Notes under the pieces: generated by a model
Told to the model about the DNA's origin: nothing
Databases searched by the model: none
What the model saw: only the letters and a program-made list of their open reading frames with translations
Shown here: piece after piece, positions 3,396 through 45,205 of the stretch
How positions within the stretch are numbered: the stretch's first letter is position 1
Layout: every line of letters starts with the position of its first letter
Assembly: GCA_030704615.1 (NCBI GenBank)
Contig: CM060731.1
Location: 33,542,001 to 33,606,000 of the forward strand
Direction of reading: 5' to 3'
Length of the DNA: 64,000 nt
Source: Takakia lepidozioides
Taxonomy: Eukaryota; Plantae; Bryophyta
Position numbers and translations under genes: made by a program

Positions 3396-3407
3396 GCTCT
3401 GATACCA
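3396..3407 (-). promoter_or_regulatory. Primer binding site, tRNA-iMet
   Basis: Minus-strand TGGTATCAGAGC, 2 nt inside the LTR end. Confidence 0.92.
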
Positions 3408-3409
3408 AA

Positions 3410-8899: not shown

Positions 8900-9753
8900 T
8901 TTCTCTCTTGCTCTGCGTCTCTCTCTAAGGGAAGTAAAATAAAGAGACTTTCTTCTCTTTCGTATTCTAGAAGGAACCCTCTCCAGCTTGACTACCACTC
9001 TCCCTCTAAGCGCGAAAAGTAGAAAAACGCAGTGACTCCCGATTTCTTGCGGGATTGCCTGCGTTCTTGCGTGTCTCTAGAAGCATCGGATTCCCTCCCG
9101 CGTGACCGTTACACATAGTCGTTCCCTTATTAGTGCACATGCCAGCAATTGGTGTACAGCTGTTCGTATTCAGTTATGGATGTCTGACTTGTGTCGCCCA
9201 AAAAAAACGGCGTGTTCTTTATTAGAACGGTTTCAATATTTAAAAATAACAGCGAATCCAGAAATCTTGGCGCACAGTCTTAGACAAATATATGTAAATG
9301 AACGAGAGTTTGATGACAAATTTTGGGATATTATACACGGTCATCCTTGTTAGCCAACCCCACGTTCGTTTCACATTTTGAACTTTCCAGGTGCGCATGA
9401 TCATTGGTAGTAGTATAAAGATACATTTACTTAATCTGCAATCCCATTCTCAGATCCTGTGGCATGCTTCCAGGAAGTCGGCTTTGTTGTTGGGTTTATT
9501 GATGAGGTTCTGGTTAACGGTTTTACAGCTGCCGACACTGCACCTAGGGATACTCTGACCACTGGGCCCACAAGAAAAGTAATTAAAATGGACGGCTGCA
9601 TATCTGGAAAGAATAACATAATATGCACAGTCGTTATCTGAGCTTCCTCCGCCATATTCTCTGCTCATTCTTCAACTGTGTTCTGGAGACAGCAGTAAAC
9701 CGATTTACACTAGATCTGCGATAGCAAGGTACAAACGTACGCGAGGAAGGAAG

Positions 9754-12700
9754 ATGGCTTCCTCTGAAGCGGAGTTCTTCTCTAACGACAAACCAGTGCC
9801 GTTCTCCCAGGAAGTCCTTGACAATGGATTTGCAATTGTTCTGGAACATGTCTTGGCTACCCGTTTTCAGCTGCAGAATGGCTCCATCTTTTTGGAGAAA
9901 GAGGTGTACGATCTTAAAGGGAAGTTGGTGAAATATTCTTTCCAAAACCGTGATGAGACGGCTCATATCAGCCAGTGGAGAGTGCGTCTTGGTCGATACA
10001 GAGTACTTGAAGAGCCTCGGCGAAAGTCCCTTGGATCATATGTGACGCCCGGGACTGCTGCTTCGGTCGTTGAAGACAAGAGGGAGGTGGTGGTGAAAAA
10101 AGAACAGACGTCCTCCACTCCAATCGTTGAGCTTTCGGATTCTTCCGATGATGACATAAGTGAAATTCCAAATCCAGTCCTTCCTACTGTGGTTGGAGAA
10201 GCTGATGAAGAAGAGATTTGTAGTGTCATTCCAAAATTGCGGGCGATGGGAGGAATGGCTGGATTCAAAAGTGAGTTGCGGGGAATTGATTGGGAATCTT
10301 TGAAGCAGGTGCCTGTGAAGTTCTTGCCGGAGACTTTTGATGGCGATATCCTATTCGAGCTGCCTCCTCCTCCGCGAGTTGGAGGTGTAACAATCATGAT
10401 GCATGGAATGGACAAGAAACACGACGGGCACCCGTGGTGCAGAACAAAAACATCCAATATTCAGAATGATGACAAGCTTGTTTTCAGGAGGACAGTTTGC
10501 AATGGACACCTTAGGTGTGATAATTTGAATTGCAGACACTTTCTTCAGTCTGGGGTTCATAATCAAAGCGAATGGGAGGGTCTGGCGGAAAATCCATTTC
10601 AGCCTGGGACTGCCCCTCCACCGGCAAACACTTTCGTCTGCAAATTATGCAAACTTGTGCCATCCTGTTTGGCGCTCTGCGGAGCAAGAATGTACTATGT
10701 TGTCCACCGTTTGAATACAATGACGAGAGCTTGTGTGCATTTTGGATTCCATAACCATCCTGTCTCGAAGGGGGATTACAGGGAGAGTGTTGAGACAGTA
10801 TCGAGGTTGATCAAACAGGAGTTCGGGAGAAACCCATCCGCAACAACATCTGCAATTGCTCTTGGCGCAAGCAAGTCCTTATTGGAAAGCCATATTTTGA
10901 GTGAAGGAGATTCTGTGGGGACTAAACTTGACGGTGCAGCATTGGACCTGGTCATGGATTATTTCTCCACTTTAAGTTCACCTAACATTCGGCATCAGAT
11001 CAATGCATTGAGAATGGGCTCTGGGATCAGAGGCTACATAGACAATATTTTGGAATTGAAACGAGTGAGCAAGTACGATTACATCCAGGACAATGTATTC
11101 CCAGGTCAAGGTGCCATCAAAGTTTTTCTTTTCAAAATGTCGACTGTTGGGGAGGGCATTGGGGTTAGCCTCGTGAAGCGGATGCAGAAGACTGGGGACT
11201 TGCAGAACTGTTTTCTTATGTTTGATCATGTGAAACGAGTGAAGGATTGGACGACAATGACTTGTCATGTCTACGATCCAGTGTACCAACGAGTTATGAC
11301 AATTGCAGTTTGTGGCATGCAATCCGAGGATACGGAATCCCAGAAGCTCATGTGGAATTCCCTGATACGTGTCATGGGCTGCCATGGGCTGCCATCTCCA
11401 AATTTCGCAGGTTTCATGGCGGATAGTGCTCAAGCAAATTTCAATGCTGTTCGTATTGTCTTCGGATCGGGCGACCCAAAAGTGCCTATGCCAGGAAGAG
11501 AGCGTATATGTCTATTCCATTGGACACAATCTCTAGAAAAACATACAAAGTCGGACATCAAACCAGAGATGCAGACTCAGCACCGTAAATTGTGCAAAGA
11601 GTACAAAGATGCTAGAACAATGAAGGAGGCGGACACTTTGTTCCAGACAATTCGTGCATGGTGGTTCTCTTCTGGAGCTGCATCACTTGAGAGTATGAGA
11701 GCATTGGAAGATTGGCTGGCGTTTTGGCACTTCTGGTATAGACAGTGGGGAGCAGCCATGACAATGGTACGAGGCTTTTATTTCATGCTTTATTCATACA
11801 TTTGCTTTCCATATTTTTGACTCATTGCTTTCTTTATGTTGTTTTCTGTGCACTGTTCTGAAGTGTGGTTATCCTCTTTGCAGAACATGTCCATTGAGGA
11901 AATGGCGGACATGTCATCTTGCAATTTGGCAGAAACTGTGCACAACGCATGGTTGCAGCAGTCTGGGAAACGAGGTCGGGATTTGTATGTGGCAACAACA
12001 GATGATTTGATACGTGCCTTGCAACAACAAACCCGATACCGTGATTTCTTACGAGGTGGGGTTGGTGGCAAGGGTCCGGACAAATGGGAGTTGATGTTGC
12101 GTGCTGAAAACAGATCTGGATCCAATCAAGATAGCACGGGCGGTGAGCATGTATGCCCAGGGAACGCCACTTGTTTCTAGAGTTCCACATCTTGAAGGGG
12201 AGGAGAGATTCGGCTCCTGTAAGAGGAAATTGAACACTCCACCTGGTTCGGATTCAGATTCCCACAGGGCAGACCGTGATAACTTCTCGAAGCCTCGTGT
12301 TCCCCTGCATGACAGCTCCATGTCCGGAACCTCCATTGTGGAGGAACCTCCAACACAACGGCAAGCTCCAGCATCAAACAGTGCCACTGAAATGGTGCAG
12401 GAGAGAAACAACCCCCTTGATGTGCTTGAGTCCGCATGCCCCGACCACGTTTGGCACATAGAACGCACAAGTGTAGGGTCTCGTGTGAAATGTACAGCGA
12501 TCAGGGCAACTAATTTCGAGAAGTGCACTTCATCTATATCCAGAGGTGGTGCCCGAACTCCTGCTCCGACTTTCACGGGCTTGATGCGTCCATACGGTCA
12601 ACCAGAAGCCAAGAACCACAAGTTCTGGTTCTGCGCAGATGATTGTGCCAGATGTGTGCATGGAACTGTGCATCCTTCCGTAGTGATGAAGCCAACTCCT

Positions 12701-13267: not shown

Positions 13268-14272
13268 CATGAACTATGTAATGTGGTATGTGGATGACCA
13301 TGATTTGAAATGTGTAATTCACATCAATTCGTCGGCTGTGCAATGATATGGCCTCCAACTATACGGAGTCAGCTCTGAGTGACAACTTTTAGGTAGTGCA
13401 CATTTGTCATTGCACCGTTCGAAGTCTACATGTCTTGCTGTCGCTATGCACTACAATCATCTTTTGAAGATGATCCTAACTCTCATTGTTATTTGAGGAG
13501 GGAGGAAGGTATTCCCGTGGCAGCCTTTATGGCGCACACTTTGTGAGGATATTTTGTCGTCCTCGTAATTGTAAAAGTGAAACAAGCATTTGTAATTGCA
13601 CAATGTTGGATGCTGCAATTGTAGGCCTCAATGCTCGTCTTGATTCTATTTAGGCAAGATTCCCTGCATTAATTCCACGGTCATAGGACCATCCACGGTT
13701 ATAGGCGGCGCATGTTAATGGTGACGTGGCAGATGACGGACAGTGCCATGTCATCATTTACCGCCACATCAGCATGCTGACATGACGCTCACGCCACGTC
13801 AGCTGGCGTGAGCGTACGCTCGCGCGCTCATGCGCAACGCTCACGCCATTGCGTCGTTGCTCTGTGATAGTCTCGTAAATGAATCGAAATTTATATGGAA
13901 GTCTAATCACCCGCATTTTCTGTAGATCCATGAGTCCAATATGGAGGAAGTGACACATACTAGAACAAACGACACACAACAGCGTACAGTGAAGAAACAA
14001 TACGACTTGAGAGTGAGGATATCATCGCCCAAGGTGGCATCTCCAGAAACCGCGGGCAATCGCGCGAGGTTACTTATACGAGGGGTCGACAAAAGCATAC
14101 CGGACGGCGAAAGACCCGTCGCCCGGAGGAATTGGCGGCGAAACCTCATCCGGCTCTGAGCAAGTGCCGCCAAAGCTGGTACTTCATTCTCCGCCTTCTG
14201 TTTTTTTTTTCTGCATTCCATTGCGAAAAACGTCCAATGAATTAATAATTATTTCCTAATGGGCAGGATGAT

Positions 14273-19413: not shown

Positions 19414-19727
19414 GATGGACACAAGAATATTCTGTATCTATGGACGGAAATGCTGAATCCGCTGAGAATTCCCAAAACACGTCTCCTTTCTTCGTGATGG
19501 ACACAAGATATTCTGTATCTATGGACGGAAATGCTGAATCCGCTGAGAATTCCGAAACGCTTTTCTTCGCGATGGACACAAGAATATTCTGTATCTATGG
19601 ACAGAAATGCTGAATCCGCTGAGAATTCCGAAACGCCTTTCTTCGTGATGGACACAAGAATATTCTGTATCTATTGACGGAAATGCTGAATCCGCTGAGA
19701 ATTCCGAAACACGTCTCCTTTCTTCGT
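19414..19727. repeat. Tandem repeat, 4 x 75-82 bp
   Basis: Units start 19414, 19496, 19571, 19647 (GATGGACACAAGAATATTCTGTATCTATGGACGGAAATGCTGAATCCGCTGAGAATTCC...). Confidence 0.95.
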
Positions 19728-20768
19728 TTCTTTCTCCCCTCGCGCACACACTCGTGCACTCGTTAGAGACACAGACATAAACGACAATTTCCAAGGTTGC
19801 GGAGGTGTAGCAACTAGGAACCTGCAAGTTGCATTGCATTGCACCTTCATGCAGCTGCGTCACAATTCCTGTCTATTTTCTCTTTGCTTTATGATCTCCG
19901 CTCTCTGACATCATAGGCCTACGTTCAAAGGGACTTTCTCATTCTTGCAGATGTAAGACACAGATGTAGTATATTAGGCCGTCCCAGTTTCTCTGTGGAA
20001 TAAACCATGTGTATTTCGTTCTAAAGAGCTGGTAAATAAAGGCAGGAGGGCTACTGTTGCGGACTTGATTCTGGGATTCGTGAGGTTTCAGCGAACTTGT
20101 GAATTGTTGTACTGTCTCTCTTGCTCTCTCTCCCTCTCTCTCTCTCTCTCTCTCCTCCTGCCCTCCAATCACTCACACACAACAATCGAAAATCGCTTTC
20201 TGCGTTTGTGTGACATAAAATGCTGTAAGTAGTAGTGCTGCTCTCTCTGTCTCTCTGCGTGCGCTTGTGTATTCGCTGTTCCCGCCACCTTGCCCATTTT
20301 CCTGGTCGTTCATCTGCTTGTGATCTGAGGACTTGACGCTTTGTATCTCTGTTACATCCTGTCTCAACCCCCACGTGTACATTTTAATACAGAGGCAGGT
20401 CTCTGTCACGCCTCCTTGACAGCTCAATGGCACATACTTTTCCAGCATTCTTCCTCTGTAGTCCCAGTTGCCTTTACCTTTCTTAATCTTCACTATTTCT
20501 TGAAAACTAGCCAAATTGTAATGTCTTCGATTTACAGCACGCATTCATTTTCTCGCTTCTTATCGCAAAATTACGCAGGACAAGGATATCAAGTGCAGAA
20601 GGAAACTGTTGCCATTCGGAGTGAATGAAGGGATGGAGCTGGAGGAGACTCGTTTAGGTCTTCATCTCTCTTGGCCAGAATGCTGCAATGCTGATACAGG
20701 ACAACCACAAGGAATAAGAGTGGATTTCGTAGACGATTTGATCATTCGGAGCGTGACATGTTGCATAT

Positions 20769-27943: not shown

Positions 27944-28072
27944 TTTTTTGTTTTTTTGTTTTTGTTTTTGTTGATGAACAGGAACTGGCCAAGTTTATTG
28001 AAAAGAGGGGGAAAACAAGAGAGCGGAGGAAAAAATAACCTCCAGGGAGGCCATAAAGGCGTATCACATGGG
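27944..28072 (-). mobile_element. 3' tail of the L1-type LINE, separated from its body by the gypsy insertion
   Basis: Minus-strand AATAAA (27994-27999) followed by an A-rich (CAAAAA)n tail; joins 40921 across the TGGG duplication. Confidence 0.65.
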
Positions 28073-28419
28073 TGTCAAGTTAAATAAGCACAGTGTGAAA
28101 CTAACTAGAATAAAGCTAGTTATTTGTATTTAACACTTGGATTTAGGTCAAGTGTTAAGTCAGGTGTCAAGTTTAGTTTGACACCTGAACTGTCTTATCT
28201 TCACGAGAGCGTCAGTCGCGCAGCTCATCTCTCTCGAGTTGAGCCTACGCGACCGAGCTCCTGTATGCGTTTAGAACTGAGTGTGTTTATGATGGGAGGA
28301 TAGGTTGTTGTGGGGTGGAGTCCCCATAGCTTGGGGTGCCCCTGGCTCGACTTCTATTTTAAAGAGTGATGGTGTTGGTTTGTGTTTCTCTTGTTATTGG
28401 AGTTTAGTTCTTTCTTATC
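28073..28419 (+). repeat. Repeat A1 (347 bp)
   Basis: Matches 40482-40828 with about 7 substitutions by manual count. Confidence 0.95.
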
Positions 28420-28435
28420 ACTCGAGAGAGATGAG
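28420..28435 (+). promoter_or_regulatory. Putative self-priming primer binding site
   Basis: ACTCGAGAGAGATGAG is the exact reverse complement of 28224-28239 inside A1; no TGG-type tRNA PBS at this position. Confidence 0.75.
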
Positions 28436-29524
28436 GCTTGCATCTGTGAGTGCCAGAGGTGAGTTTAGTTTTAGCACTTGTGGTTTTTGTTTTAAAAGTG
28501 AGAGAAACGATTTGTTGAAAGAAGGTGAGCAATGCTTGGAAGGGTGTGCAAGTGCAGGTGGGGCGAGACGATGCCATTTGTTTGTTTTTTGATGATTTGA
28601 GCCTATGAGGAGAGGCGGAGCTGCCGCTCTACTTGTGATCACCACTTAGCAACTTATGAACTCACGGGGGAAAACAACTTGCTGGGGTGCGGCTATAGAC
28701 ACTGTGCCGTCATTGGCATTCATGATTACGATTGTACAAGGCAGGGCCTACGGGAGAAGTAGTTTGTTGCCAGATGATGGGCAGGAATTACGTTGATGAC
28801 TTCGTAGTGTGATATCCTACGCAACTAACGGACTGAGGGCCGAGCAAAGCAATCTGTTTATGACGATCAGAGATCCGGCTATCGTGAGCACGTAGCAGAA
28901 CCTGACCTGGCCTTCTCGACATCGGCTACGAGTAGGAGCTAGGGAAAAGACAAGCATATAAGATCATGGCGGCAAAGAAAGCGGATGCCTCCCAACTATG
29001 AATCCTCCAATGCTGGCTCAACTCCCCAGCCGATGGTGAACTATGCGAAAATGCGTGGCGAAGGAGAGAATGCTGGTGTCTGTGACTACATTGTGATTAC
29101 ATTGCAGTAGGCACAGCTGGAGGAGGGTGTTGATTCTCCTTTTTACATGTCAAAAGTCTACTTCATATCAGACGAAGCTGAGGCTGTCCTCGCGTTTCAG
29201 GGCAGGGTTGGTCTCACCTTGAGGGAGGTGTTGGAAGCAGTCTTTGACACGAAATCTGAACTGTGTACGGGCCATACATTGGCACCGATATTCCACCGAC
29301 ACTTCAACATTCAAAAAGGATTTCAACACCAAAGGGAGCACAAAAGTGCCTTATGTGAAATTCTGCAAGTGCTGGAAGAAGAGGAAGAAGAGGTACACAG
29401 ATTCGAAGAATGAAGCAAGGCATCCGCACCATACAGTGGGTTTCGAAAAGGAAATCAAGATTCGGTGGGCTGTCTTTGCATCAAGCTTTGTGGGTCGACT
29501 TCCACAGGGGCTGTCAATGAAACA

Positions 29525-29790
29525 GCTTGCACATCTGAAGAAGGGCCCTGCACATCAGTCTGCAGTCCAAGATTCTCAAAGAGGGGATGGTGCACTGCAT
29601 TCTCAGGAGCTGGAGGAGCTTTTCTCAATAGCCGCCTCCAATCATGCAGTTCTGGTGGTTCTGACAATGAAAGAGAGACACATGGATTGTTGCAATTTTG
29701 TGGTAGCCCATGGGAGGATCCAATTTATAAAAGCGCTGCGGAGACAAATGCAGTGGGAAGGATCACTTTGAATGGTTTTCTTTCTAAGGG
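29525..29790 (+). pseudogene. Captured fragment of mitochondrial Rho GTPase (MIRO) EF-hand region
   Basis: LKKGPAHQS, GDGALHSQELEELFSIA, SPWEDPIYKSAAETNAVGRITLNGFLSK resemble plant MIRO (recognised from memory). Confidence 0.7.
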
Positions 29791-31561
29791 CAGGTTGAGA
29801 GAGAGAGTGTTGTGGTGTACTAGACTTCCAGGCATTCACTGCGTAGTGGAGCGCGCCAACCCCGCTCTCCACCACAGGTGCTAGCAGTAGCTGCTGCATA
29901 CCCTGAGGTCGCTCCCACCAGATGAGCCACTTCTCGGCGGCGCACAGTTGGTGCAACAGAGGAGGTTGCTCTATGCGAGATCGCCCCTTACTGTGAGCTG
30001 CATCTGAGGGCACCCACGCCATGCCGCTGATGCCAAGGACGTTGTGATGCCATGTGCTGTTGTTGTAAGTCCCGCCATAGCTCTCTCTCTCTCTCTCTCT
30101 CTCACGGAAGACTGCTGCTGTGGAGTGCGCTCGGAAATGCGGTGATGGTGGTCCTCCGTAGTGTAGAACAGGTCGGGGGCGTGTGTGCGTCCAGGCATCA
30201 CAGTCCACGCCTCACTAGAAGCATTCGTGTCATTTACCACTGGGGTAATGACTCATTTTGAGTCGTAAAAGTCAAAAAACAGGGATCGACTGGAAGTTAC
30301 AACAGACCAGTTACAACAGACGTGGTAGTTGGGTTGGACATCCAATGATTGGAGTGGTAAAGGACGTAGACGCGCAAACAACTGCTCAGCGATTAATGCG
30401 ATTAATGCTGAAGAACCACGTGGCGTAACCAGGCGGGCCGCCCGTGTGTCTGATGTTTTGAGCTGACTTTGACTTTTCCCTCCGGATGAGTGGACTGACT
30501 CACCTGGGGCGCGGTGACACATGGACGCGGACGTGGATGCGGACGTGGATGCCGATATGGCGGCGCCGTGACGAGCGGTAATGCCGCCGCGTGGCCACGG
30601 GCTCAAGACGCCACATCGCAGTCGGCCACATAACTTGGAGTGCTGCATGTCACGTGGCAACAGCCACTGGCGAAGTCGACTGCACAACTGCCGGCAGACG
30701 AATCCACGGGGACCACGTGGAGAGTGTGTGGGTCGACGCGTGGCGTCGTCCCCACGCAATGGCAGTGAGGGGTACGACTGCTAGTGGAAAGACGCAGAGT
30801 GCTTGTGCCATCTCGGAACTGCTTTGGCCAACTCCGCTGCCACTATGCTAGTTGGTTGCACTACAGTAGGAAAGCACTGCAAATGAGCACTTGTAGTGGT
30901 TTGTGTGAGTTGTCCAACTGACTTGCATTCTAAGCTGAAAATATGGTTCTGATGCATTCTACTGGTTTTAGTGGTTCACCCATATGCAGGGGGAATTGAG
31001 AAGCAATGATACTGGGCATCCAGTAGTCCCGTTTACTACCAAGTGGTTCCCGGAGTGGTCGCGGACATGCAGTCGATTCGAAAAAGACACGAATGCTTCT
31101 AGTGCCTCCAAGTAAAGCCAACAGCATTCTATGCTCAAACTGCACCGGAAATGGGGCAGTAGTGTACTCACAGTGCGAGGGGAACGGCCTCGGGAACCCG
31201 TAGATAAACAGGGAACCAAGACAAGTATTAAAAAAAAAATATGAGGAGTTTTCTTTGTATTTGTTCTGTCTTATTAAAAAAAAAAGGGGGGGGGGGGGGG
31301 GGGGAGAAAAGAAAAAGGTGTTATGTTTAAAGAGCCTGGTTGGTCATATCTTTGTCAAATGAGCTCCGTTTGACTCAGTCTTTGAGGGGATAGCTGCAGA
31401 AAGGGGATATCTACCTATCTAGATCTAGTTTTTGTTTTTGGGACTCTGCTAAAAATCTATGGAATTTTTAGAGAGTGAGTGTGCCATGAAAGATCCACAA
31501 TCCTGTTTCTAGAACCTGTTCTGGTCTACATGAGAGATAAATCTGGGGATGTACTCCTTGT

Positions 31562-32215
31562 ATGGCTGGGGGAAATGAGGACGTAATTGAAGGGCAGGTC
31601 TCTTCTCTTAGCCTGTGCACACAAGGGGACGGGATTTATGTTTCCCAAGGAACTCAGACTGATTTGAGTGGAGAACAGTTGGACGAGTTGATTGCATACT
31701 GGGAGTCAGGCATTAACAGTAGACAACAAACTGCTGTAGTTGGCGTTGAGGGCCTCAATGTTGCTTTGGACAGTCAGAACTCTGTTGGAGCCAGCAGTTC
31801 TGCAGCTGTAAGTGAAATACCAAAGTGGGTGAAAGCTAGGCTTGGAACACAGCCAAAGACAGCCCCGGGTACCAAGGTGTTCAGCCACAAGGCCGTGGTG
31901 TACTGGAGCAGAGGAGCAGGAGCTACACAAGTTTGTGCAATCAGACATGGTTGCAGCCGGACACGCTCTGCACAAGGCAATCACGAGCGGGGGTTCATTA
32001 GCAATGACAAATTTGTTTTGCTTGAAGGGGATGCAGTCATCCGCAATGAGGACACCCGCAATCGTCTCAAAGCTTTCGAGTTGAGAGACTATCAGACCCT
32101 ACCTTTGTTTTCTTTAGTGTTCAGTGAGCGGGAGATAGGGGAGTATTGTCTCTACCTGGCAGAAAGAGGAGGAGGGTTGGTTAGAGCGAGCTACTGTAGC
32201 TTGGGACAAGGTTAG
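31562..32215 (+). CDS. Accessory ORF upstream of gag, unknown function (may be internally frameshifted)
   Basis: 217-aa ATG-initiated ORF in element sense orientation; no recognised motif. Confidence 0.4.
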   Translation: MAGGNEDVIEGQVSSLSLCTQGDGIYVSQGTQTDLSGEQLDELIAYWESGINSRQQTAVVGVEGLNVALDSQNSVGASSSAAVSEIPKWVKARLGTQPKTAPGTKVFSHKAVVYWSRGAGATQVCAIRHGCSRTRSAQGNHERGFISNDKFVLLEGDAVIRNEDTRNRLKAFELRDYQTLPLFSLVFSEREIGEYCLYLAERGGGLVRASYCSLGQG

Positions 32216-33029
32216 TGGCAGGTTTCTGGACATAGATATACCTCCTACACCTTACTATCATGCAGAGCGAGGCACTTTGAGAGAAGTCTGGCAGTTGATA
32301 GCATAGATCAGGATTAGATCTTGTTGGGTCGGGCTTCTATTCTTCCCCTCCATCTCTGTACTATTTTCATTACCTTGTACTTGTAGTTGTCAAAGCCTCT
32401 CTTAGTGGAGGCCAGTCAGTCCGGGGTTTTGGGTTGGGATATTCTGCAGGATCCGCATTGCACATGGATTTTGGTGTGGGGGTGTTGATGTTTTGATTTC
32501 TTGTGTTTGGATCCCCCCCCAACACCTGCATGCTTGACTGTGCGCCATGTTGGTTTTGTGTGGGCGCTTGCTTTCATAGGGATTAGGCCGGATTTGATCA
32601 CCGGTCAATCCTAGAGTATGCTGTCGGTGGTGAGGCTGATGACCAGCAAGACCACCAGTGTTTCTTCTATGGTGAGACTGGGTTGATGACCAGCCAACCA
32701 TAGGAGTTCTTGCGGTGGATGCAGGTGCAGGTGCCCTGAGCCATTGGGATATGACCCTTAAACTGCAACAGGTGCCCACCCGTGTCACTATTAGAATTAG
32801 TACTAGAGCCTTATAGTGTCACGTGGGGGAGGTGCACATTGGAGTGTCATCACGGAGTTACCCAAGGGTTTGAGGGGAGTACGGCTACAGGCAGTAGCAG
32901 TGAGAGTGGGTTCACCAGACGAGGTTCGTTTCAGACCACCTTCACCTCCACCCTCAACTAGGCAGAGAGTCAGACACAGACTCGGAGGCTTCATCAACAG
33001 GTGTGCAGTTTCATTCGCCATTGTTGTGG

Positions 33030-35420
33030 GACGACATGGAGGAGATGTATGGAGCTACCAAGGGGCCTCGTAGGTACTCTGGAGCTGTGGGCACAATCGA
33101 GTTGGATGACTTTATCCAGGAGTTCGACAGCTGGTGTGATTTGCAGCAGATGCGCAATCCACAGTTATTCACCCCATTCGGGCGTGGAAGGGACTGTTCC
33201 AGCATTTGGAAGGCCCGCCTATGGACGATTACCACGAGTTCAGGCGAGGACATGAAGCAGAGATTGAGGAGTGAGGATGTATTGGTCACCTGACTACGTC
33301 TCCATTACTCGAGGCACGACGCGACCAGTAGCTGCATCAGTACCAATATCTCCCACTGCCAGCACTAGTAGTGGAACAAGTAGTGCTGGTACTTCTGCAG
33401 GTGGTACCAGTTCAAAAGGTGCTACTACTCCTCCTGCCACGACTACAACACATGTGCCTAGATTCAACCGGTGGTGGAGTTCTTCCAGGAGTTGCGGAGG
33501 AACTACCAGGGTGTACGGACAGAGAAGCTGCGAAGTTTGCAAGACTTCCAGCGCAAACCAGTGAGAGCCTGCGAGAGGCGCATACACTCGTATGAGGCGC
33601 TTGATAAGTGTGACCCAAGGGGTTACTGAAGCTCAGGCAATCCAGTTTTGGTATGGAATTCTGGACAAGGAGCTCAAGAGAAGGGTGCGAGATGCAACCC
33701 TGTTACAAGCAGCCCAACCCACATTAGCAGATGTGTTTCTGCTGGCTGAGCGGATTGAGCTCAACATGGTGGAGGAGCGAGTTGTTACCATTGGATTTGG
33801 CAAGGACATGCCTGCACAAGGCGCAGCTGCCAGCCCACAGGCACAAGGGACTGCCCAACAGCGTGGTCAGGGGGGCAAGGTTCCCAACCCAAGTTCCATG
33901 GAGCTTACAGGGGACCTCAGGTGCAGAGGCCCGTGGCATCTTTTGCAGGCCAACGCAACCAGGGGTGATATGTTGGACATGTGGAGGACCCCATGTCAAG
34001 AGAGATTGCCCAGAGAGTGGCAAAAGGCCGGCACAAGCACAGCCTGCACAGTTGCAGTGTGGGCATTGTGGCAAGTATGGGCATGGAGATGCCCAGTGTT
34101 ATGACTTGCATCCTGAGTTGCGCCCAGGCCAGTTCCAAGGGAACAATGGTGGCCGGGGGCGAGGTGGACCAGCCCAGAGAGGACGAGGTGGTCGGGCACG
34201 AGGTGCAGGCCAAGGGCAAGCTCAACATGGCCAAGGACGCGGAGGTCAGGGTGTTGACCAAGGCATGGCCAACCGGCTTCAGCAGCTAGAGCAGAGGCTC
34301 GCTGCCATGGCTACAGCTCAGGCGGTACCGGCTCCCAGGCGGGATGGTCCACCTCCTGCTCCTGAGGGAGGAGATATGGGAGGCATGGGATTCATGTGCG
34401 GAGCAGCACTACCACTAGTGCAGGTGGAGTCTGCTGCAGCCGTGACTCGAGGAGCAGCACGAGTTCCTGAGCCACGAGGTGCAGAGGTGGAATTGGATCC
34501 ACAGCGTGGGGAGGCAAACCGTCAGGCGAGGCTTCCTCAGTCATTCACATTGGCGGAGACTGTGTCGACGCCATCCATGGCACCTAGTTCTCGCCCGACT
34601 GTTACCGAGGCGGAGGTTACTATGCCATTGGGGAGAGCTACACGTGCAGCACTGACACCTGCTACCAAGGCTAGTGCAGCCGGTGTGTTGTTGGGGGCAG
34701 CCACCTCTGTGTGTCAAGCCCCACTGTTCTCGGCAACCATGATTGCGACGCCGGGGGTAAGACCAGCTGCAGTGTTCAGACTAGCAGCAACACTCTGTGA
34801 GAGTGGGGAGGTCACTTCATCTTCTGCGGAGTTACTGGAAGGTGTAGTGGCAGAGGGATCCCCGGATTTGAGGGTCAAGACTGCCACGGCTGCGCCATGG
34901 CAAACTGCAGCTGCCAGGTTGACGGAGCTGCCAGCTAGGCCAGCCTTTGAGCGCGCCATGGTGACACCTGGAGTTGTCTTGTTAGACAACCAGGGAGGCA
35001 TTTTCACTTTGAGTGGACCGGCAGGCAAGAAGTACCGGCCACTGCGGGTCTTGTTGGACTCAGGAGCTCAGCCACTGATGTTGGGCAGAGCTGCTATTGC
35101 AGGTTTGGGCCTCATGGAGGCGGATATGGAGCCTTGTCCTTTCCAGATACAGACATCTCTGGGAGGATCAGAGCAGGCTCGGGGCATGACACGGCGTGAG
35201 TTGGCCATTAGACATAACCGGATCATCCTATAGATGGCTCAGTGATGCGAGCCAAGGCCATTGTGACAGACGCGGTCTCTTACGATGTCCTTGTTGGTGG
35301 GGCAGTGTTATATCCCATGGGCTTCACCCTGGACTTTTGGGAGGAGTCAGCATCCTACAGGCCTGGATGGCAGTCAGGGGATGGTCGTCGTGCACAGCTC
35401 CCTGTGACATTCATTGGGGG
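33030..35420 (+). pseudogene. gag + aspartic protease (frameshifted)
   Basis: LDDFIQEFDSWC; CWTCGGPHVKRDC and CGHCGKYGHGDAQC knuckles; VLLDSGAQP; YDVLVG. Confidence 0.85.
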
Positions 35421-35739
35421 TATTTGCGGCTGCCCAGCGGGGCAAGATGCCAACACTAGCCGCAGTTAGTTGGCCTGGAGAGTTGCTGGAAGGCAATGCC
35501 CATGCCAAGGATGTGCCACCTCCAGCAGAGCAGGATGACATGCATGGTACTGCGGAGTTGCCTGCCATGGTTGCTCACACTCCATTGTGGGGTACGAGCA
35601 AGGATTTGCAGCAGGCTGCTGATGGACGGGTGCAACAAGCTTGGTAGAAGCTTTCGTACCGTCAGGAGAGGAGGAGAGTGCGGTGATTGCACCAAGACCA
35701 CCCCAGTTGTCGCCATTGGACACCACACCTCTTGTGTGG

Positions 35740-36720
35740 CAGTGCCCGGATGAAGGCATATGCCTTCTGGACTTGTTTGTCGGGATCAGCACTGGATTGG
35801 CTGCAGTGCTGCAGGCAGGTGTACGAGTTCGACGTTACCTGTATGTGGAGAGGGATGAGACTGCACGACGCGTCTCACTGCGCCATGTTGCTCAGTTGGT
35901 ACAGCAGTACCCTGAGCTGTTGCCAGTGTCTGCAGTTCGTGGATACCAACAAGCCTTGCCAGCAGACATTTCGTTGCTGGGGCGCAGGATTTGGAGCAGG
36001 TTGGCTCCATTGATCTGGTAGTGGCAGGTTGGCCCTGCCAAGGGCATTCATCAGCCGGGCATGGCAATGGATTGCGAGACTCGAGGACGGGTCTGTTTTG
36101 GGAGATGGTGCGGATTTTGCGCCACTTGCAGCTTCATCAAGCTGTATCGCCAGCATACATCTTGGAGAATGTGCCACTGATGGGCGATTCTCGGGCCAGG
36201 GTGATGGCCAGTGTGCATCAAGTCCGATCGTGGCTTGGGTCAGCAGTGTTGCTGGATGCAGCTGCAGTGGGATCACAGGCTCATCGTCCACGGCTATGGT
36301 GGACTAACTTGATGCCACCCGCACTGCTCAAGCGTGCATTTGATGGGGTGCAGCGGCCACACACCTCATAGTGGACATTTTGGACACAGGGAGGCAGTCT
36401 CAACGTGTGAGACACGATGACCGTTCGCCTTTGGCAGTGGTCAACAGAGTGGGTCAACCACGAGCAGCATTACCTACACTGCTCAGCTTCCCAGGATTCC
36501 ATGCTTTTTGGGATGGTGGACCTGGCCTCCTGTGGGATGCTCAGTTGCAGCAGTTAGTGGAGCCTAATGCCGACGAGCGAGAGCGGGCTATGGGGTTTTC
36601 CACTGGGACCACGGCGGTGCCTTCTCTTTCTGAGGCATCACGTCATCAGGTGTTGGGGCAAGCAATGGATCTCAATTGCTTGACCTGGATTATCAGCTTG
36701 GCTATGGCTGAGCAACGTAG
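35740..36720 (+). pseudogene. DNMT3-like C5 cytosine methyltransferase domain within pol (frameshifted)
   Basis: LDLFVGISTG (I), YVERD (II), DLVVAGWPCQG (IV), ILENV (VI), AHRPRLWWTN (VIII), ERERAMGF (IX), LGQAMD (X). Confidence 0.9.
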
Positions 36721-37129
36721 AGTGCGGAGTGCACTTCCCTTGACGGTCTCTCTGCCTACCGAGACGGTACAGGCAGCGAGTGGGGGCGAGCCGGTGAGGA
36801 CCATGGGGTGTAGACATCCATGGCACACGTGGGAGGTGCTCGAGGTTCAGAGAGAGTTGGCAGCCAAGGCAGCTGTGATGGATGAGGTTGGGGATTCTTC
36901 TCGGGTTGAGGAGGTCCTCAAGGATGAGATGATGGGGCAAGATGAGGCCTTGTCATTGACTGAGCAGGCAGGGAGTACTGCTCAAGAGGTTGCAGCATAG
37001 CAACCACGGGACGCGTCTTCTACCTCTAAGCCTGCTGGACTCAAGGTTGCAGTCACGGAGGACAACTGGGAGCCTGATGTTGGACCTATAGTCACCGGAG
37101 GAGAGAGACGACGTATACGGCGGTTCTTG

Positions 37130-38508
37130 AGGGCTTACAGGAACTGCTTTGCCTTCAGTTTGAAGGACTTAGGAGCACTGAAGGGTCAAGAGATTCGCAT
37201 TGAATTGGCTACTGACACGCCAATCTTTCGGAGACCCTATAGATACAGTGACATGGAGAGGTCTTGATTCAGATGAGAACTCAGGACCTTTGGGAGGCTG
37301 GTTTGGTGGAGCTATCTGGGGGAGAGTATGCTTCAGCCACAGTGATGCCAGCCAAGAAGGATGTCTTGGCAATTGGACGGAGAGACGTATGTGCGGTGAT
37401 TACCGGCCTGTAAATCGTCAGACCAAGTCCGATAGGTATGCCATACCAACACCAGAGGAGATCTTTGATGCCATTGGGCATGCCAAGGTCTTTAGCACAT
37501 TGGATTTACGATCCGGATATCACCAAGTTGCCGATCAAGGAGGCGGATAAGCAAAAGACGGCATTCTGGGGGATCAATGAGCACGGGAAGGATTGCCTAT
37601 ACCAGTGGCGGTTCTTACCATTTGGGCTTAAGAAACGCTCCGGCAGAGTTTCAGAGAGTCATGGACAGGATTCTAGCAGGGGTGGAGTTTGCTCGGTGCT
37701 ACATAGATGACATCATCATTTTAGTGCTACGGTGGAAGAGCATAAGAGACACCTTCAGGGGGTATTTGAGCGCTTGAGGGCGCACGGATTGAACTTACAT
37801 CCGGGAAAGTGCAGGTTTTTCCACAACCAGATTGAGTATCTGGGTCACATGATATATCCTGGAGGATTGGGGGTACAGCAGACTAAGGTAGAGTCCATTG
37901 CACAGGTTCCACGCCCCACGGATGTGAGCCGAGTTCGAGCTTTCATGGGGTTAGCAAACTATTATAGACGGTTTGTTAAGGGATTTAGTGCCATTGCAAA
38001 GGCTCTAACCAAGCTGACCAAGGTGGACCAGGAGTGGCAGTGGGAAGATGAGCAAGAACAAGCTTTTCAAGAGCTCAAGGCGAGGTTGACCTCGGCGCCA
38101 TCTTGAGACGACCTATCAGGGGGCGTCCTTTTCAGCTGCATACAGATTGGAGCATGCTGGGGCTTGGAGCGGTGCTCATACAAGTGGATGATGAGGGAAG
38201 AGAGTTCGTAGTGGCTTATGCTAGCCGCTCAAACAACGTTGCAGAGTCTAAGTATAGCTCATATGAGGGAGAATGCTTAGCTGCAGTGTGGGCCGTGGCA
38301 CACTTCAGGTGCTATCTATACGGCAATCTCTTCACCCTTGTCACGGATCACCAGCCACTCAAGTGGTTGATGGAGTCAGACAAGCTTACGGGGAAGCTTG
38401 CACGGTGGGCACTCATCCTTCAAGAGTATGACTTTCAGGTGGTGCATCGACCGGGTTTGGTCAATCGCAATGCAGATGGGTTGAGTCGCAATCCATGCAC
38501 GAGCCAAC
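37130..38508 (+). pseudogene. Reverse transcriptase + RNase H (frameshifted)
   Basis: [60 protein letters not shown]. Confidence 0.92.
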
Positions 38509-40134
38509 ATGGATGACACTGGAGCTCGGTGGCATGGTGAGACGGACGAGGAGATGGTGCCCGGATGGCATGCATCTGCATTTCTGTGTATCTTGGCAGC
38601 GGAAGGCCAGGTTGGACCTGCAACATGGATGACTATAGATCAAGTGTCTGAGGACCCTGAGGCCAGCAATGAGCAAGGTGGCGCCAAAGATATACATGAG
38701 GATTCAGTTGTGTTGGACTACCTCCGCACTGGAGATACTGCAGCCACTGTGACTGCCAAAGAGAGGGATCGGATCCTACAACGAGCCAAGAGGTTCAAGT
38801 GGGAGGGGACACACCTGCTCCGAGTGTGGGAGGATGGTCGAGTGAGGATTGTGCCTCACCCAACACAGCGGGCACGGTTAGTGCGGCATGCCCATGAGGA
38901 GTTGGGGCATTTTGGGGTGCGACGCACTAATAGTCTACTGCTGGGGCAGTATTGGTGGCGTGGTATGCACACAGAGGTGCAACAATTTGTGGCTAGGTGC
39001 ATGGTGTGTGACAGGGTGCGTGCTTCATTCAACGCCCCTACTCCACAATTGCACCCTCTTCCGATCATGGGATTGGGCTACAGGTGGAGTCTTGACTTCG
39101 CAGGGCCATTGCCACTGACCATGCGCCACAACAAGTACGTGTTAGTGATGGTGGAGCACTTCTCCAAGTGGATTGAGTTGGTTCCATTACCTGATAAGGC
39201 TAGTGAGGGAGCTGCGTATGCATTCTTGGATTATGTGCTTAGCCGATTCGGTGCTCCAGCTGAGGTACTCACGGACCAAGGGAGAGAGTTCTTGGGGGAG
39301 TTTCAGGCTTTGTGTGACAAGACCTTGATAGACCACCGCACCACTTCTCGGGATCATCCTGAGGCCGATGGCTTGGCAGAGAGAGTTGTTCAGACAGTAA
39401 AGAGGGGTTTGCGCAAGTATGGCTTGCAGAAGGGACACCTAGGAGATTGGGACCTTCAGTTACCCTGGTTAGCCATGGGCTACAGGTTCAGCAAGCAAGC
39501 ATCACTTGCCTCCTTCTCACCATACTTTATTCTCTTCGGCCGAGAGCCGGATTTGCCTACATCCATTCGCAGAGAAGCTGCTACAATTCTTGACCTTGAC
39601 GATCCGGACGTGTGGGCACGTGCATGTGAGCAGCGTGCAGAGTTGTTCAAGAAAGTCATGCCCATGGCTTTCGAGAACCTTGCCATTGCACAACACCGTG
39701 ATACGTTGAGGTATGCTACCATACGTGGTGGGGGCTATTGTCCTGGGGTTCGGAGATTCAACCCTGGTGACTATGTCTATCTGCAGCAGACTGCTCCTAC
39801 GACCTTGGATGTGACTGCAGGACGTGTTATTTTGAGGGTTCGAGAGGTCTTGCCCTCAGGCGTCTTGGTCTTGGAGGGCCGGGATGGCATAACTTGGAAG
39901 GACCATGTGCGTAATTGTGCACCATGTCACCTTTCGAATGTCGATGGTAGGATTGACCCAAACCTGGCAGTGGTATCTGCAGGTTTGAGGTACATGTTGT
40001 GTGGGTCTGCTAGAGGGGCAGCCACCATGCTGGTGTGTGATCGATGCTCTAGAGGTTGGCATATGGGATGCTTGACTCCACCTCTTGAGATGGTTCCGGA
40101 TGGGAATTGGTTATGTCCACAATGCATTGGATAG
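38509..40134 (+). CDS. DDE integrase with C-terminal PHD finger
   Basis: HEELGH...CMVC, WSLDFAGP, LTDQG, GLAERVVQT; YMLC...CDRCSRGWHMGCLTPPL...NWLCPQC (first Cys is Tyr). Confidence 0.92.
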   Translation: MDDTGARWHGETDEEMVPGWHASAFLCILAAEGQVGPATWMTIDQVSEDPEASNEQGGAKDIHEDSVVLDYLRTGDTAATVTAKERDRILQRAKRFKWEGTHLLRVWEDGRVRIVPHPTQRARLVRHAHEELGHFGVRRTNSLLLGQYWWRGMHTEVQQFVARCMVCDRVRASFNAPTPQLHPLPIMGLGYRWSLDFAGPLPLTMRHNKYVLVMVEHFSKWIELVPLPDKASEGAAYAFLDYVLSRFGAPAEVLTDQGREFLGEFQALCDKTLIDHRTTSRDHPEADGLAERVVQTVKRGLRKYGLQKGHLGDWDLQLPWLAMGYRFSKQASLASFSPYFILFGREPDLPTSIRREAATILDLDDPDVWARACEQRAELFKKVMPMAFENLAIAQHRDTLRYATIRGGGYCPGVRRFNPGDYVYLQQTAPTTLDVTAGRVILRVREVLPSGVLVLEGRDGITWKDHVRNCAPCHLSNVDGRIDPNLAVVSAGLRYMLCGSARGAATMLVCDRCSRGWHMGCLTPPLEMVPDGNWLCPQCIG

Positions 40135-40384
40135 TGGGAGTGGATACAACCATGGAAGGCTAACAAGAAACACAAGGCCCAGCTACTAGGAGACCTTGAA
40201 CACACGAGATCTTGGCTCAAGTTCACAGATTGCAAGACGGCGACTAACGATGGGGCTACTCTTGTACCCGGCCTCTTGGTCGATAGAATTTGAGTACAAT
40301 AGGGACAGTGATAGAGGACTTAGTACGGCTGTGGCTATTACATCTTGTAGCTATCTAGAATTAGAGGGACCTATCCACCAGCTC

Positions 40385-40393
40385 GGGGGGCGA
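40385..40393 (+). promoter_or_regulatory. Polypurine tract
   Basis: GGGGGGCGA directly before the TGTGGC start of repeat B1. Confidence 0.6.
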
Positions 40394-40916
40394 TTGTGGC
40401 AGACTACTTTATTGTGCATATATGTGTGGTGTGGTTTGGACAGCGATGTAGTTGTGTAGCGATACATATGCGCACGACAGCTGTCAAGTTAAATAAGCAC
40501 AGTGTGAAACTAACTAGAATAAAACTAGTTATTTGTATTTAACACTTGGATTTAGGTCAAGTGTTAAATCAGGTGTCAAGTTTAGTTTGACACCTGAACT
40601 GTCTTATCTTCACGAGAGCGTCAGTCGCGCAGCTCATCTCTCTTGAGTTGAGCCTGCGCGACCGAGCTCCTGCATGCGTTTAGAACTGAGTGTGTTTATG
40701 ATGGGAGGATAGGTTGTTGTGGGGTGGAGTCCCCATAGCTTGGGGTGCCCGTGGCTCGACTTCTATTTTAAAGAGTGATGGTGTTGGTTTGTGTTTCTCT
40801 TATTATTGGAGTTTAGTTCTTTCTTATCTATTGTGGCAGACTACTTTATTGTGCATATATGTGTGGTGTGGTTTGGACAGCGATGTAGTTGTGTAGCGGT
40901 ACATATGCGCACGACA
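40393..40916 (+). repeat. Terminal B1 (40393-40479) - gc - A2 (40482-40828) - B2 (40830-40916)
   Basis: B1 and B2 are 87 bp with one difference; the B1/A2 junction is the palindrome GACAGCTGTC. Confidence 0.95.
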
Positions 40917-40920
40917 TGGG

Positions 40921-43900
40921 GAACACCCAGCACTGATAGGAACGGGGGGGGGGGGGGACAGCAGGAACAAGCCAGATCGTGGCTAAACTATGGTGCCTGA
41001 GTGATGATGATGAAAGAGCCCAAAGTGTTAAGATGAGCCAAAGAAGGAGCCCCAAGTCTTGAAAGGAACCAAAAGAAGGGGCATCCTAGGGGAAGGGTAA
41101 CAGTATAACATGTCCTGAAAACAAAGAGACTATCAACGACCGAACTCTAGATGCACTTTAGATTTAGAACTGTGGGTCTTGTTGTGCTTCCAATTGATGT
41201 CTGGTGCATCCAATTCAACCGGTGACTTGCCAAGAGACGGGGAGGAGGTCGTGCCATGTAATTCGAGAGTCATCGATTCTGGAGCAGAGGATGTTGTCTT
41301 TGGCCCAGGTGGTGTCGAAATCCGCAAGCAGCTGCCGACTCATGCCTTCACTACACCTGCTGATGGTTGTTTGCAAGGACACCCAAGCCTTACGCCCCTC
41401 AGTCATTAGATCTGAATACAATTTGCAGAGGATCAGTCTGATACTGGGGTGTTTTCCCTCAAAGGTCAAAACACATCTGGCCTTCCATATTGCCCATAGC
41501 GTGTGTGCTCTAAGACAGGCCCAGATCGGGCATCCGTTCCAAGCAGCGCTTCTATGTAAATTAAGCAACAGGAGAGGAGCTGATAGGGGTGGGAGGGCCT
41601 GCCAATGGGAATAGAAGCCTGCCACTATAGTCCAAATCCTAGCAGGAAGCTGGCAGGTGAGCAAAACATGCTCCATAGTTTCATTGCAACCACAGTTGCA
41701 CATCAGACAAGCAGGGTTCTGGCCTTGAAGGTTGGCTGCCACAGGGAGGATTTTATTGGCTATCTTCCATAAGAAAGCGCTGATTTTGGTAGAACGGTGC
41801 TTTGCCCAAATATCCTTCCAGATTTGCTTCCATCTTTTTTCCGGCAAGCTGAGGTTCCATTTTCCATTCCACTTAGCCGTAAAATTAGCGTTGCCCAGCA
41901 ACAGCTTATAGCCAATCTTGACTTTGTACCCGAGGAGAGGTGTTTTCTTGACATCCATCCAGGTCCATTCTCCCGGGTCAAGTTGAAGTCTGCTAAGGGG
42001 ATAACGCAAGAACCATGTCAAGGGTGTCCTTTCGGCCCAGCAAAACTCTCCTCTAGGGGGTGGCTTGGGATCTGGTATCCCAAGCAGAGTTTCTAAAACT
42101 CTAATTCTAAAGGCGGAGTCCTGGCACATGTGCCCTTGCCCGATATGCAGTAGGGTCCCTTCAGAATCGGCAATAAATCTTAGGCCTTCCCAGTGCAATG
42201 TAGAGCTGGAGCTAGTAAGGCAAAGAATCTGTCACCTTCATAGTTGCCGAACCAGCAGGGGAGGGTGTTCTGCGAGTTGTCTCCTCATTGATCTGTATCT
42301 CCTCTCCTTGTATGTTTCTGTTGTGTGGTGCTTCCATTTCAGTAAAGGCAGAACATATGACACACCTTGCTTAATGTGCTCCCATCCGTGTCTGATAGAA
42401 TTCGCGAAAATGAGCGTGGACATGATGTTGGGATGCAGAAAGTCTCCATTTTCCCGGATATCGGCTATGTGTGAGAGTCCTTTGGATTCCCAAGTAGCCC
42501 ATTTTTTGTGAAGAGAGATGAGGAGGGCATAGTCCGGATTGTTGTTTCCAAACAACGGCTGGCAAATTGCCTCCTCAAAGCAAAGTGCCCTTCTTTGAAA
42601 CAAGTGCGGTCTGATCGACAGCCAGACAGCCCAGATAGACCTCCATGCGGCACTCCCCATGCATCTAGATTTTTCTGATCCATGGGTCAACCACCTCAGA
42701 GAAGGAGCCCAAAAGGGGGAGGTAAGAGGAGTAGAATCCACTAAGTGGGCTCTCACCAAGTTGCACCAGGGACTGTCACCATGCACAAGAGCTCTTGGTA
42801 TCCATTTGACAAGGAGGGTTTTAATCTGTAGGGAGGGATCAATGATGCCTAACCCTCCTTCTTTTTTGGGCCTACAAAGTTGCGCCCAGGGGACCAGAGC
42901 CCTCTTAGTGGGCGCTTGAGAGGAGGCACCCCAGAGAAAGTTACGCATCAGAGTTTTAATTTTCCTGACCAGCTTACAGCCCGGGGACCAAACAGAGGTA
43001 GAAAACCAGATGGAAGTCAACAAGATTTGATTGAGAAGTAAAGCTCTGCCAGCCAGGGAGAGCATGGCGGAACTCCAAAAGGCCAACTTTTTACGCAGCT
43101 TTTGTAGAATTGGCTCATACCTTTGATCCTCGGAGAGCCCGATTCCAACTTGGAAACCCAGGAGAGTATGCCCCATGCCTGGCTGGAGCCACCTGAGACC
43201 TAGCTCTTGTCCCCAAGGCGCTCCATGGTGTCTTGTGGCACTGGGGGGAAGCTCCGTAAGGAGACCCACCAATTTATTCCAATTCACCTTCAGACTAGAA
43301 GCGGAGCATAATACCTGCAGAGCTTCAACTGCTCTGATACTATTGGAGGCATCCTCGTTACTCAGCAAGAGGGTAGTGTCGTCTGCATACATAGACAGCT
43401 TAACAGGCGGGCCCTGTAGTAGATTCGTGCCTACAATATCTTGTCTAGCAGTAAGGTAGTGTCCGAGAGCATCTGCTGCTATCAAAAAGAGGTATGGGGC
43501 CAATGGGCAACCCTGCCTGACGGATTTGTGAAGATGGAAGGATTTAGATATGGTACCATTAATTGTCACTTTGCTAGAGGCAGACGTAAGGAGCAACTTC
43601 ACCCATCTCGAAAAGAAGGCTGGCAGGCCCATCTTTTCCATGACTCTATGCAGGAAGGTCCAATCGATCTTATCTAACACTTTCTCAAAGTCTAGCATGA
43701 GGATAGCCAGGGGCTGCTCAGACCTCTTGGCTTCATGCAAACCTCGTTTATAAGAAGCAGGTTGTCGAGAATCATTCTACCTCTAAGAAAACCTGTCTGT
43801 TCCGGTCTGATGACCCGGGATAGGATAGGCTGAAGTCTCGATGCCAATGCTTTGGCAATAATTTTGTAGGTGGTGTTAAGAAGAGTGATAGGACGGTAAT

Positions 43901-44669: not shown

Positions 44670-45205
44670 TACCAACTATCATCCTGAACAATATCCTGGT
44701 GGACATGTATGCAAAATGTTTTGATGTATCTGTACCAAATGCCATTCTGCACACTGCCCCGGCAGATCTGGATAAGGGCAACGAGGTCCATGGCGACATC
44801 TACAGAGCTGGAATTGTACCAGCTGTCACTTTGAACAATACCCTGGTGGACATGTATGCAAAATATGGGCGCATCGAGGATGCAAAGGAAGTGTTTGACA
44901 CTATGGTTGAACAAGACTTGGTGTTGTGGAATGCGCTGCCTGCAGGCATTGCTGTAGTTGTACCAAATGTCACTGTAAACAGTGCATTGGCAGATCTGGA
45001 AAAGGGCAAAGAGGTCCATGGCGACATCTTCAAAGCTGGAATTGTACCAACTGTCATTCTGAACAATGCCCTGGTGGGCATGTCTGCAAAATGTGAGTGC
45101 ATCGAGGATGCAAAGGGCGTGTTTGACACCATGGCTGAACGAGATGGGGGGTCGTGGAATGCGATGCTTGTAGGTTTTGCATGGCAGGGACGTGGTGTGG
45201 AGGCT
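44670..45205 (+). pseudogene. PLS-class PPR gene fragment with internal duplication
   Basis: GNEVHGDIYRAGIVP..LNNTLVDMYAKYGRIEDAKEVFDTM...WNA occurs twice plus a partial third copy. Confidence 0.8.

Follow-up and report, generated by a model that had tools for sequence, protein, structure and literature searches.

Split direct repeats and an LTR-internal palindrome at the ends of a DDE-integrase gypsy lineage of green algae and bryophytes

By what route does a retrotransposon with a DDE integrase become inserted when its integrated ends lie inside the long terminal repeat (LTR) that reverse transcription would make? In the textbook account of LTR retrotransposons and retroviruses, it is the two ends of a linear cDNA that become integrated, and circular forms are regarded as dead ends. 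The question is raised by a gypsy-type element at positions 28,073-40,916 of a 64-kb stretch of Takakia lepidozioides contig CM060731.1 (the window, meaning the whole stretch that was analysed). A preliminary description of the window had given the layout of this element as A1-internal-B1-gc-A2-B2, where A and B are direct repeats, and repeat finding together with direct reading confirmed this layout to the base, with one extra T at position 40829 in addition. At either end of the integrated element stands one half of a palindrome that lies inside the reverse-transcription LTR, and the two central bases of the palindrome are lost.

Repeat borders and the reverse-transcription LTR

The repeats, priming sites and ends of the element are arranged in the window as follows.

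28069-28072, forward strand: left copy of the target-site duplication (TSD), TGGG, matching 40917-40920
28073-28419, forward strand: A1, comprising distal U3, R and U5 at the 3' side of the reverse-transcription LTR and starting with TGTC, the left integration end; 340 of 347 positions identical to A2
28224-28239, forward strand: self-primer site inside A, a 16-nt exact complement of the primer-binding site (PBS); R, and with it the transcript, is predicted to start here
28420-28435, forward strand: PBS of the self-priming (Tf1) type, directly 3' of A1; exact reverse complement of 28224-28239
40385-40392, forward strand: polypurine-type G-run GGGGGGCG adjoining B1 (polypurine tract, PPT; plus-strand primer site)
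40393-40479, forward strand: B1, the 5' portion of the reverse-transcription LTR, in which U3 starts, ending with GACA; one mismatch in 87 against B2
40476-40485, no strand: palindrome GACA-GC-TGTC, which reads directly as GACAGCTGTC; proposed to be recognized and cut by integrase within the LTR
40480-40481, no strand: spacer GC, the centre of the palindrome between B1 and A2
40482-40828, forward strand: A2, differing from A1 at 7 of 347 positions
40829, forward strand: single extra T at the A2/B2 junction (U5 end and U3 start), missing from one variant contig and from the Calypogeia copies
40830-40916, forward strand: B2, the terminal copy of B by repeat comparison with B1, ending with GACA, the right integration end
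40917-40920, forward strand: right copy of the TSD, TGGG

The left flank reads CACATGGG immediately before TGTC, and the right flank reads TGGGGAAC immediately after GACA, which together give the 4-bp TGGG duplication. A1 and A2 of the window copy have diverged by ~2%, and repeat searches detected neither the A nor the B repeat elsewhere in the 64-kb window.

Two of the repeat borders coincide with the landmarks of reverse transcription. B starts at the base directly after the G-run PPT, and a G-run adjoins B1 at this same place in every family examined. A ends at the PBS, which pairs with A itself, at about position 152-185 and over 12-17 nt, in L001, L010, L032, L039, and L064 (L-numbers denote the loci of relatives). 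The paired sequences differ among these loci, and the four different sequences found among families represent covariation, which argues for Tf1-like self-priming with a predicted transcript start inside A. Because B starts after the PPT and A ends at the self-priming PBS, the unit made by reverse transcription is B-NN-A, where NN is the 2-nt spacer, with U3 starting at the start of B and U5 ending at the end of A. This assignment agrees with the LTR of B+A given in the preliminary description.

Judged by the usual organization of Ty3/gypsy elements, a PBS after the end of U5 and a PPT before the start of U3 are found when the unit B-NN-A is considered, but not when the integrated termini are. 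Nor do the two ends have one complete LTR in common: A alone stands at the 5' end, opposite B-NN-A-B at the 3' end, in the window copy as in all relatives. The remaining two borders, at the start of A and the end of B, fall at the landmarks of integration, namely TG...CA and the target duplication. We also considered A-B as a canonical LTR combined with a damaged 5' LTR, and rejected this arrangement. No copy has B after A1, the PBS follows A and not B, and the position of B1 after the PPT in every family would be left without a reason.

The predicted cDNA ends also look integrase-like, in that TG lies 1-5 nt from the start of B in every family and CA lies near the end of A in most families, although not in all. 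There are hints that the integrase may also bind these outer cDNA ends, for example, to bring them together.

Integrated ends and copy forms among relatives

In every locus fetched from an assembled genome, a G-run, B, CA-GC-TG, A, and B follow one another directly 3' of the integrase gene. These loci are listed below.

Calypogeia fissa, L001, L089, L090, and L091 (four copies): PPT-B-GC-A-B
Riccia, L002: PPT-B-GC-A-B
Klebsormidium, L003 and L006 (two families): PPT-B-GC-A-B
Volvox africanus, L004: PPT-B-GC-A-B
Volvox reticuliferus, L088: PPT-B-GC-A-B
Haematococcus, L087: PPT-B-GC-A-B

The Haematococcus locus L005 was left out on account of its simple repeats. Long arrays of ~18-bp tandem repeats are also present in L087, at 3248-5283 and 8444-9990, upstream of the reverse transcriptase gene and toward the 5' end.

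Eighty metagenome loci were annotated with a library of A and B repeats. The PPT-B-NN-A-B architecture was seen in ~25 metagenome contigs, and B-NN-A-B is present in ~22 non-duplicate metagenome loci, nine of which also include A1 upstream; at least four metagenome pairs (L038/L039, L079/L081, L009/L017, and L074/L077) are one locus sampled twice and were counted once. The motif CA-NN-TG with a 2-nt spacer occurs in all 30 of the B-A-B 3' ends listed and in L087 and L088 besides, with point changes in the half-sites of several old copies. The spacer in the metagenome loci is always 2 nt long and reads GC, but also AC, AT, GT, or AA; GC is ancestral, and the other four look like products of transitions. 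The layout belongs to an old lineage that ranges from the algae Volvox, Haematococcus, and Klebsormidium to liverworts and moss-type metagenomes, and is not a one-off.

This distribution bears on the possibility that the window element is an ordinary gypsy copy that was rearranged on a single occasion or was wrongly assembled. The window structure was read from the assembly and from short Logan contigs (~100-300 nt), and not from spanning long reads. However, the same structure and landmarks recur in the assemblies of six other species and in dozens of metagenome contigs, and no ordinary copy was found among them, which refutes this explanation; we rate it as exceedingly improbable. Misassembly of the window element in particular is very unlikely, because the same architecture is present in independent assemblies. 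In one variant Logan contig, the end of A is joined directly to the start of B, and the other joints in those contigs are ambiguous.

Summed contig depth in two DNA runs was ~1e6 in the element (39000-40916) compared to ~5e2 in the flank (40917-41600), and the drop between these values falls at ~40914, which is a bin edge at most 3 bp from the end of B2 at 40916. In the contig sets that hold the stretch, the depth of the family is ~2000-fold that of the flank, a ratio that serves as a rough guide only. Because contig depth in the element is far above that in the flank, we conclude that the family and its relatives at ≥90% identity are extremely abundant in the organism.

A perfect 4-bp TSD lies outside TGTC...GACA in 15 of the 21 judgeable copies (TGGG, GTCA, ATTG, GATT, CTAA, AAGG, CATA, ATGT, ATAA, TTTA, TACA, TACA, GTAT, TTTT, and AACT), and three more copies match at three of four positions. 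At a chance rate of 1/256 per copy, 15 perfect duplications in 21 copies correspond to P ~4e-32. These counts exclude the chlorophyte loci L004, L087, and L088, in which A1 lies outside the fetched 10 kb (5.4 kb upstream were fetched for L088). TG...CA termini with a TSD of 4-6 bp, as in Ty3/gypsy elements, are thus found here, and the integration chemistry, as read from the termini, is of the DDE type. The claim that the inserted ends of the window copy are the halves of an LTR-internal palindrome, with the centre lost and a 4-bp TSD, holds family-wide in green algae and bryophytes. Ordinary LTRs, which would have spoken for a one-off rearrangement, were not encountered in the other copies: no locus in the metagenomes or among the fetched genomes has B upstream of A1, that is, an ordinary BA...BA structure. 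Likewise, the form A-B-A...B was found in none of the 20 metagenome loci with a visible 5' end.

A second form, A...B, has precise GACA ends and mostly intact 4-bp TSDs. About half of the old metagenome copies have this form, and none of the 11 young ones does (Fisher P 8e-4). The loci with A-internal-B but no A2-B2 are L008, L042, L048, L055, L059, L066, L067, L069, and L071, together with ~16 further 3' ends. Within the old set, to which this comparison is restricted, the integrase is slightly more disrupted in A...B than in A...B-A-B copies (median 6.5 compared to 5), and a test of age did not separate the two forms; they were separated only by the contrast with young copies.

Comparison of the repeats within and between copies indicates how they arise. 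The identity of A is higher within a copy than between copies in all three groups, and that of B is higher in groups 1 and 2. In one family group, A is 0.875 identical within copies compared to 0.797 between them, and B is 0.847 compared to 0.798. The young Calypogeia copies show a small excess for A (0.990 compared to 0.986) and no difference for B (0.931 in both cases), and in several young copies B1 matches B2 with 100% identity. The higher identity within than between copies implies that each insertion renews the A pair and the B pair from a single template.

The A2/B2 joint, in which the end of U5 abuts the first base after the PPT, is carried inside the B-A-B copies. It is exact in the Calypogeia copies L001, L090, and L091, and in L089 it is exact at the joint itself. 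Variants of the joint contain the first 3 nt of the PBS in one family group, one additional base (+1) in the window, and changes of -2, +1, and -8 elsewhere. At 13606-13678, the young Calypogeia copy L089 has a terminal B2 with a 25-nt internal deletion, which is confined to B2, and its B1 is intact, which implies that B2 is not needed after insertion.

Proposed routes from cDNA to the integrated form

The best reading of these data, and one that we hold with slightly better than even confidence, is that an intermediate with joined U5 and U3 ends, of the 2-LTR-circle type, is cut by the DDE integrase at the palindrome. In the linear cDNA, BA-internal-BA, the end of U5 would first be joined to the start of U3, as happens in 2-LTR circles. 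At a distance of |B| bases from this joint, where |B| is the length of B, lies a palindrome in which integrase would then nick each strand after CA. The nicks would leave two recessed CA-3'OH ends with 2-nt 5' overhangs, which are the normal substrate for strand transfer and the product of normal 3' processing. Loss of the central GC and an ordinary 4-bp TSD would both be expected, because the nicks would flank the 2-nt spacer and leave recessed CA-3'OH ends. The insertion product would be A-PBS-internal-PPT-B-NN-A-B, and only this form would keep a downstream R and be able to replicate again. The A...B copies would then probably be later deletions between B1 and B2, although direct integration of un-joined linear cDNA would be an alternative origin.

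There is precedent for such cleavage in retroviruses, where the palindromic junction of 2-LTR circles is cut by the integrases of foamy virus (PMC1180852) and, in vitro, of HIV-1 (PMC1905944). In those systems, as proposed here, a DDE integrase cuts a CA...TG palindrome in continuous DNA to give integration-competent ends. By contrast, the retroviral palindrome is the ligation joint itself and its cleavage is a side path at most, whereas in the present elements the palindrome lies inside U3, the A2/B2 joint stays intact, and the route would apply to every genomic copy.

Several points weigh against the joined-end reading. A symmetric 2-LTR circle would hold two identical palindromes, and their random use predicts 50% A-B-A...B copies; this form was found in none of the 14 complete copies (P 6e-5 against the 50% expectation) and in none of the 11 young 3' ends, all of which are B-A-B (P 5e-4). 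The absence of A-B-A...B copies implies that the intermediate is asymmetric or that the choice of site is biased. One candidate bias is a preference for the palindrome nearest to the joint, which is compatible with a B that is shorter than A in all 10 families (39-200 bp compared to 280-680 bp). In addition, the A2/B2 joint is mostly precise and is cleaner than in typical end-joining, and the half of the old metagenome copies that have the A...B form could have arisen by deletion or by direct integration of linear cDNA. Finally, we infer the circle, the cDNA ends, and the transcript ends from genomic copies. Of the proposal in the preliminary description that a 2-LTR circle integrated at an internal att site, the geometry and the programmed character of the mechanism have stood, whereas the covalent circle is the part that the counts of complete copies do not favour, at least in its symmetric form.

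The same asymmetry would be accounted for without a closed circle. In this alternative, reverse transcriptase that reaches the U5 end would switch template and continue at the start of U3, either on the same cDNA or on another packaged alongside it. This would give a right-extended linear molecule, BA-internal-BA-B..., in which integrase would use the A half-site farthest to the left and the B half-site farthest to the right; the permutation and the internal sites would be unchanged. Both the strict lack of A-B-A...B copies and the B-A-B structure of all young 3' ends would follow. So would the mostly precise joint, including the first 3 nt of the PBS in the joint of one group, as if the plus strand had run to the end of the minus strand, and un-extended cDNA would yield the A...B form. 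However, the data give no reason why only the plus strand should jump, and the right-extended linear molecules are hypothetical. Moreover, the restriction of A...B to old copies fits decay and not a frequent primary product. We regard a template switch as unlikely on balance, yet deserving of serious weight.

Coding content and relation to known elements

The internal region of the window element contains the following features.

28436-32615, forward strand: long 5' leader of 4.2 kb, no Pfam match
32616-35640, forward strand: degenerate gag/protease-like region, collinear in patches with open reading frame (ORF) 1 of L001
35641-37000, forward strand: C5 cytosine DNA methyltransferase (DNMT) module inside pol, in several frames; PF00145 at 35991-36371, E 7e-14; collinear with the DNMT part of L001
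37200-38106, forward strand: reverse transcriptase, in pieces split by frame changes; RVT_1 on two ORF pieces
38103-38516, forward strand: RNase H; PF17917, E 8e-37
38509-40134, forward strand: intact DDE integrase of 541 amino acids; H2C2 at 38860-39024, rve at 39079-39360, and a C-terminal PHD finger at 39997-40125

The Pfam matches place reverse transcriptase, RNase H, and DDE integrase (rve) in the order typical of gypsy pol, as in Ty3/gypsy elements. A C5-DNMT domain lies upstream of the reverse transcriptase in the window (PF00145) and in ORF1 of L001, which is the organization of the Gypsy-DNMT3 group. In the window copy, the reverse transcriptase and the DNMT are broken and the integrase is intact, and its catalytic residues D196, D256, and E291 are invariant in a family alignment with twelve relatives. 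Integrase relatives were found in liverworts, Sphagnum, Klebsormidium, Volvox, and Haematococcus; the closest are liverwort proteins, at 75-82% identity, and proteins of K. nitens are 50-55% identical to the window integrase, the palindrome and the layout being the same in the K. nitens loci. We conclude that the window element is a degenerate copy of an ancient green-lineage Ty3/gypsy lineage whose integrase carries a PHD finger and which often has a DNMT3-like module.

The near-intact Calypogeia copy L001, with two mismatches in 340 between A1 and A2, encodes gag-protease-DNMT, reverse transcriptase-RNase H-integrase, and the PHD tail only. Its leader is 1.5-1.7 kb long, compared to 4.2 kb in the window, and contains no ORF of more than 95 amino acids. 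The window leader also holds a pair of 23-nt inverted repeats (30213-30235 and 31082-31104) that are 96% complementary with 846 nt between the arms. This pair may be a small nested insertion resembling a miniature inverted-repeat transposable element and the source of part of the extra leader length. In the host flank, a run of ~15 G lies at 40943-40957, 27 bp downstream of the element end, and tandem repeats outside the element comprise two copies of a 228-bp unit at 44721-45176 and four copies of a 76-bp unit at 19427-19735.

These coding regions bear on whether circular copies are inserted by a tyrosine recombinase, as they are in PAT, Ngaro, and TOC1. Such an enzyme could come from a hidden ORF of the element itself, in cis, or from a DIRS/PAT element, in trans. 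The arrangement A1-internal-B1-A2-B2 is the hallmark of the split-direct-repeat DIRS elements (PMC8969392; PMC5890265), and the resemblance extends to the internal B/A joint, which equals the joint of the two termini, and to the extra A-B, which is always at the 3' end. However, DIRS elements use a tyrosine recombinase and lack TSDs, whereas the lineage in the window has a DDE integrase, TG...CA ends, and the 4-bp TSDs described above, which are DDE signatures and contradict insertion by a tyrosine recombinase. Moreover, the DDE triad has been conserved over about a billion years of divergence, and no match to PF00589 or to any other recombinase was found on any ORF of the window element or of L001. 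ORFs of the window leader gave neither a Pfam match nor a tyrosine recombinase, so that the hidden recombinase gene suggested for checking in the preliminary description did not materialize. We consider this explanation very improbable.

The preliminary description had treated A...B-A-B repeats as foreign to DDE gypsies. The layout is indeed the hallmark of DIRS elements, but its occurrence with Gypsy domains is already in print: de Mendoza et al. (2018) describe KnitGypsy-Dnmt3 of Klebsormidium nitens as having a DIRS-type repeat structure with Gypsy domains (Fig. 4c legend, PMC5890265). Like the window element, KnitGypsy-Dnmt3 combines a Gypsy pol and a DNMT3-like domain with DIRS-type repeats, and the K. 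nitens loci L003 and L006 carry PPT-B-GC-A-B; the window copy differs in residing in a land-plant-type genome and in its far longer leader. The same paper gives no analysis of TSDs, PBS, PPT, or palindrome, and no mechanism (PMC5890265). A full-text literature search on split or permuted LTRs in gypsy elements found nothing beyond KnitGypsy-Dnmt3. The use of an LTR-internal palindrome by a DDE integrase, the self-priming, the spectrum of products, and the distribution in the green lineage appear to be new. In Tf1/sushi elements, too, the PBS has its complement within the LTR and not in a tRNA; Tf1, in contrast, has ordinary LTRs, and the likeness to Tf1/sushi noted here is one of priming.

A further candidate is the PHD-carrying Gypsy-7a_cRei of Chlamydomonas reinhardtii, in which the right LTR ends with 8 bp that are missing from the left LTR (Craig et al.; Fig. 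6 legend, PMC9940879) and which made 86 new insertions in a laboratory strain (PMC9940879). Compared by its published description only, Gypsy-7a_cRei may have the same design with an 8-bp B. A search with the Volvox integrase returned no Chlamydomonas relative by name.

The idea that a circle is the precursor for integration, associated with Panganiban and Temin, was reportedly rejected historically. We suggest, tentatively and with more doubt than conviction, that the present elements are natural obligate users of joined-end cDNA, in which a DDE integrase cuts an LTR-internal palindrome and not the cDNA ends, so that the Panganiban-Temin route has been made compulsory, and that they were perhaps the chassis of the tyrosine-recombinase DIRS/PAT/Ngaro elements, or the reverse, by a swap of the integration enzyme on a permuted split-repeat genome. 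If the route is confirmed, it would add a second mechanism by which DDE integrases insert retro-DNA and would bear on the origin of the DIRS-like elements that have the layout in common. In practical terms, LTR finders that expect identical terminal repeats will mis-annotate such elements, and it is the A1/A2 pair that must be compared when copies are dated by LTR divergence. The question can be approached by experiment with the young copies of Calypogeia, with Klebsormidium, and possibly with Gypsy-7a, which is active in the laboratory.

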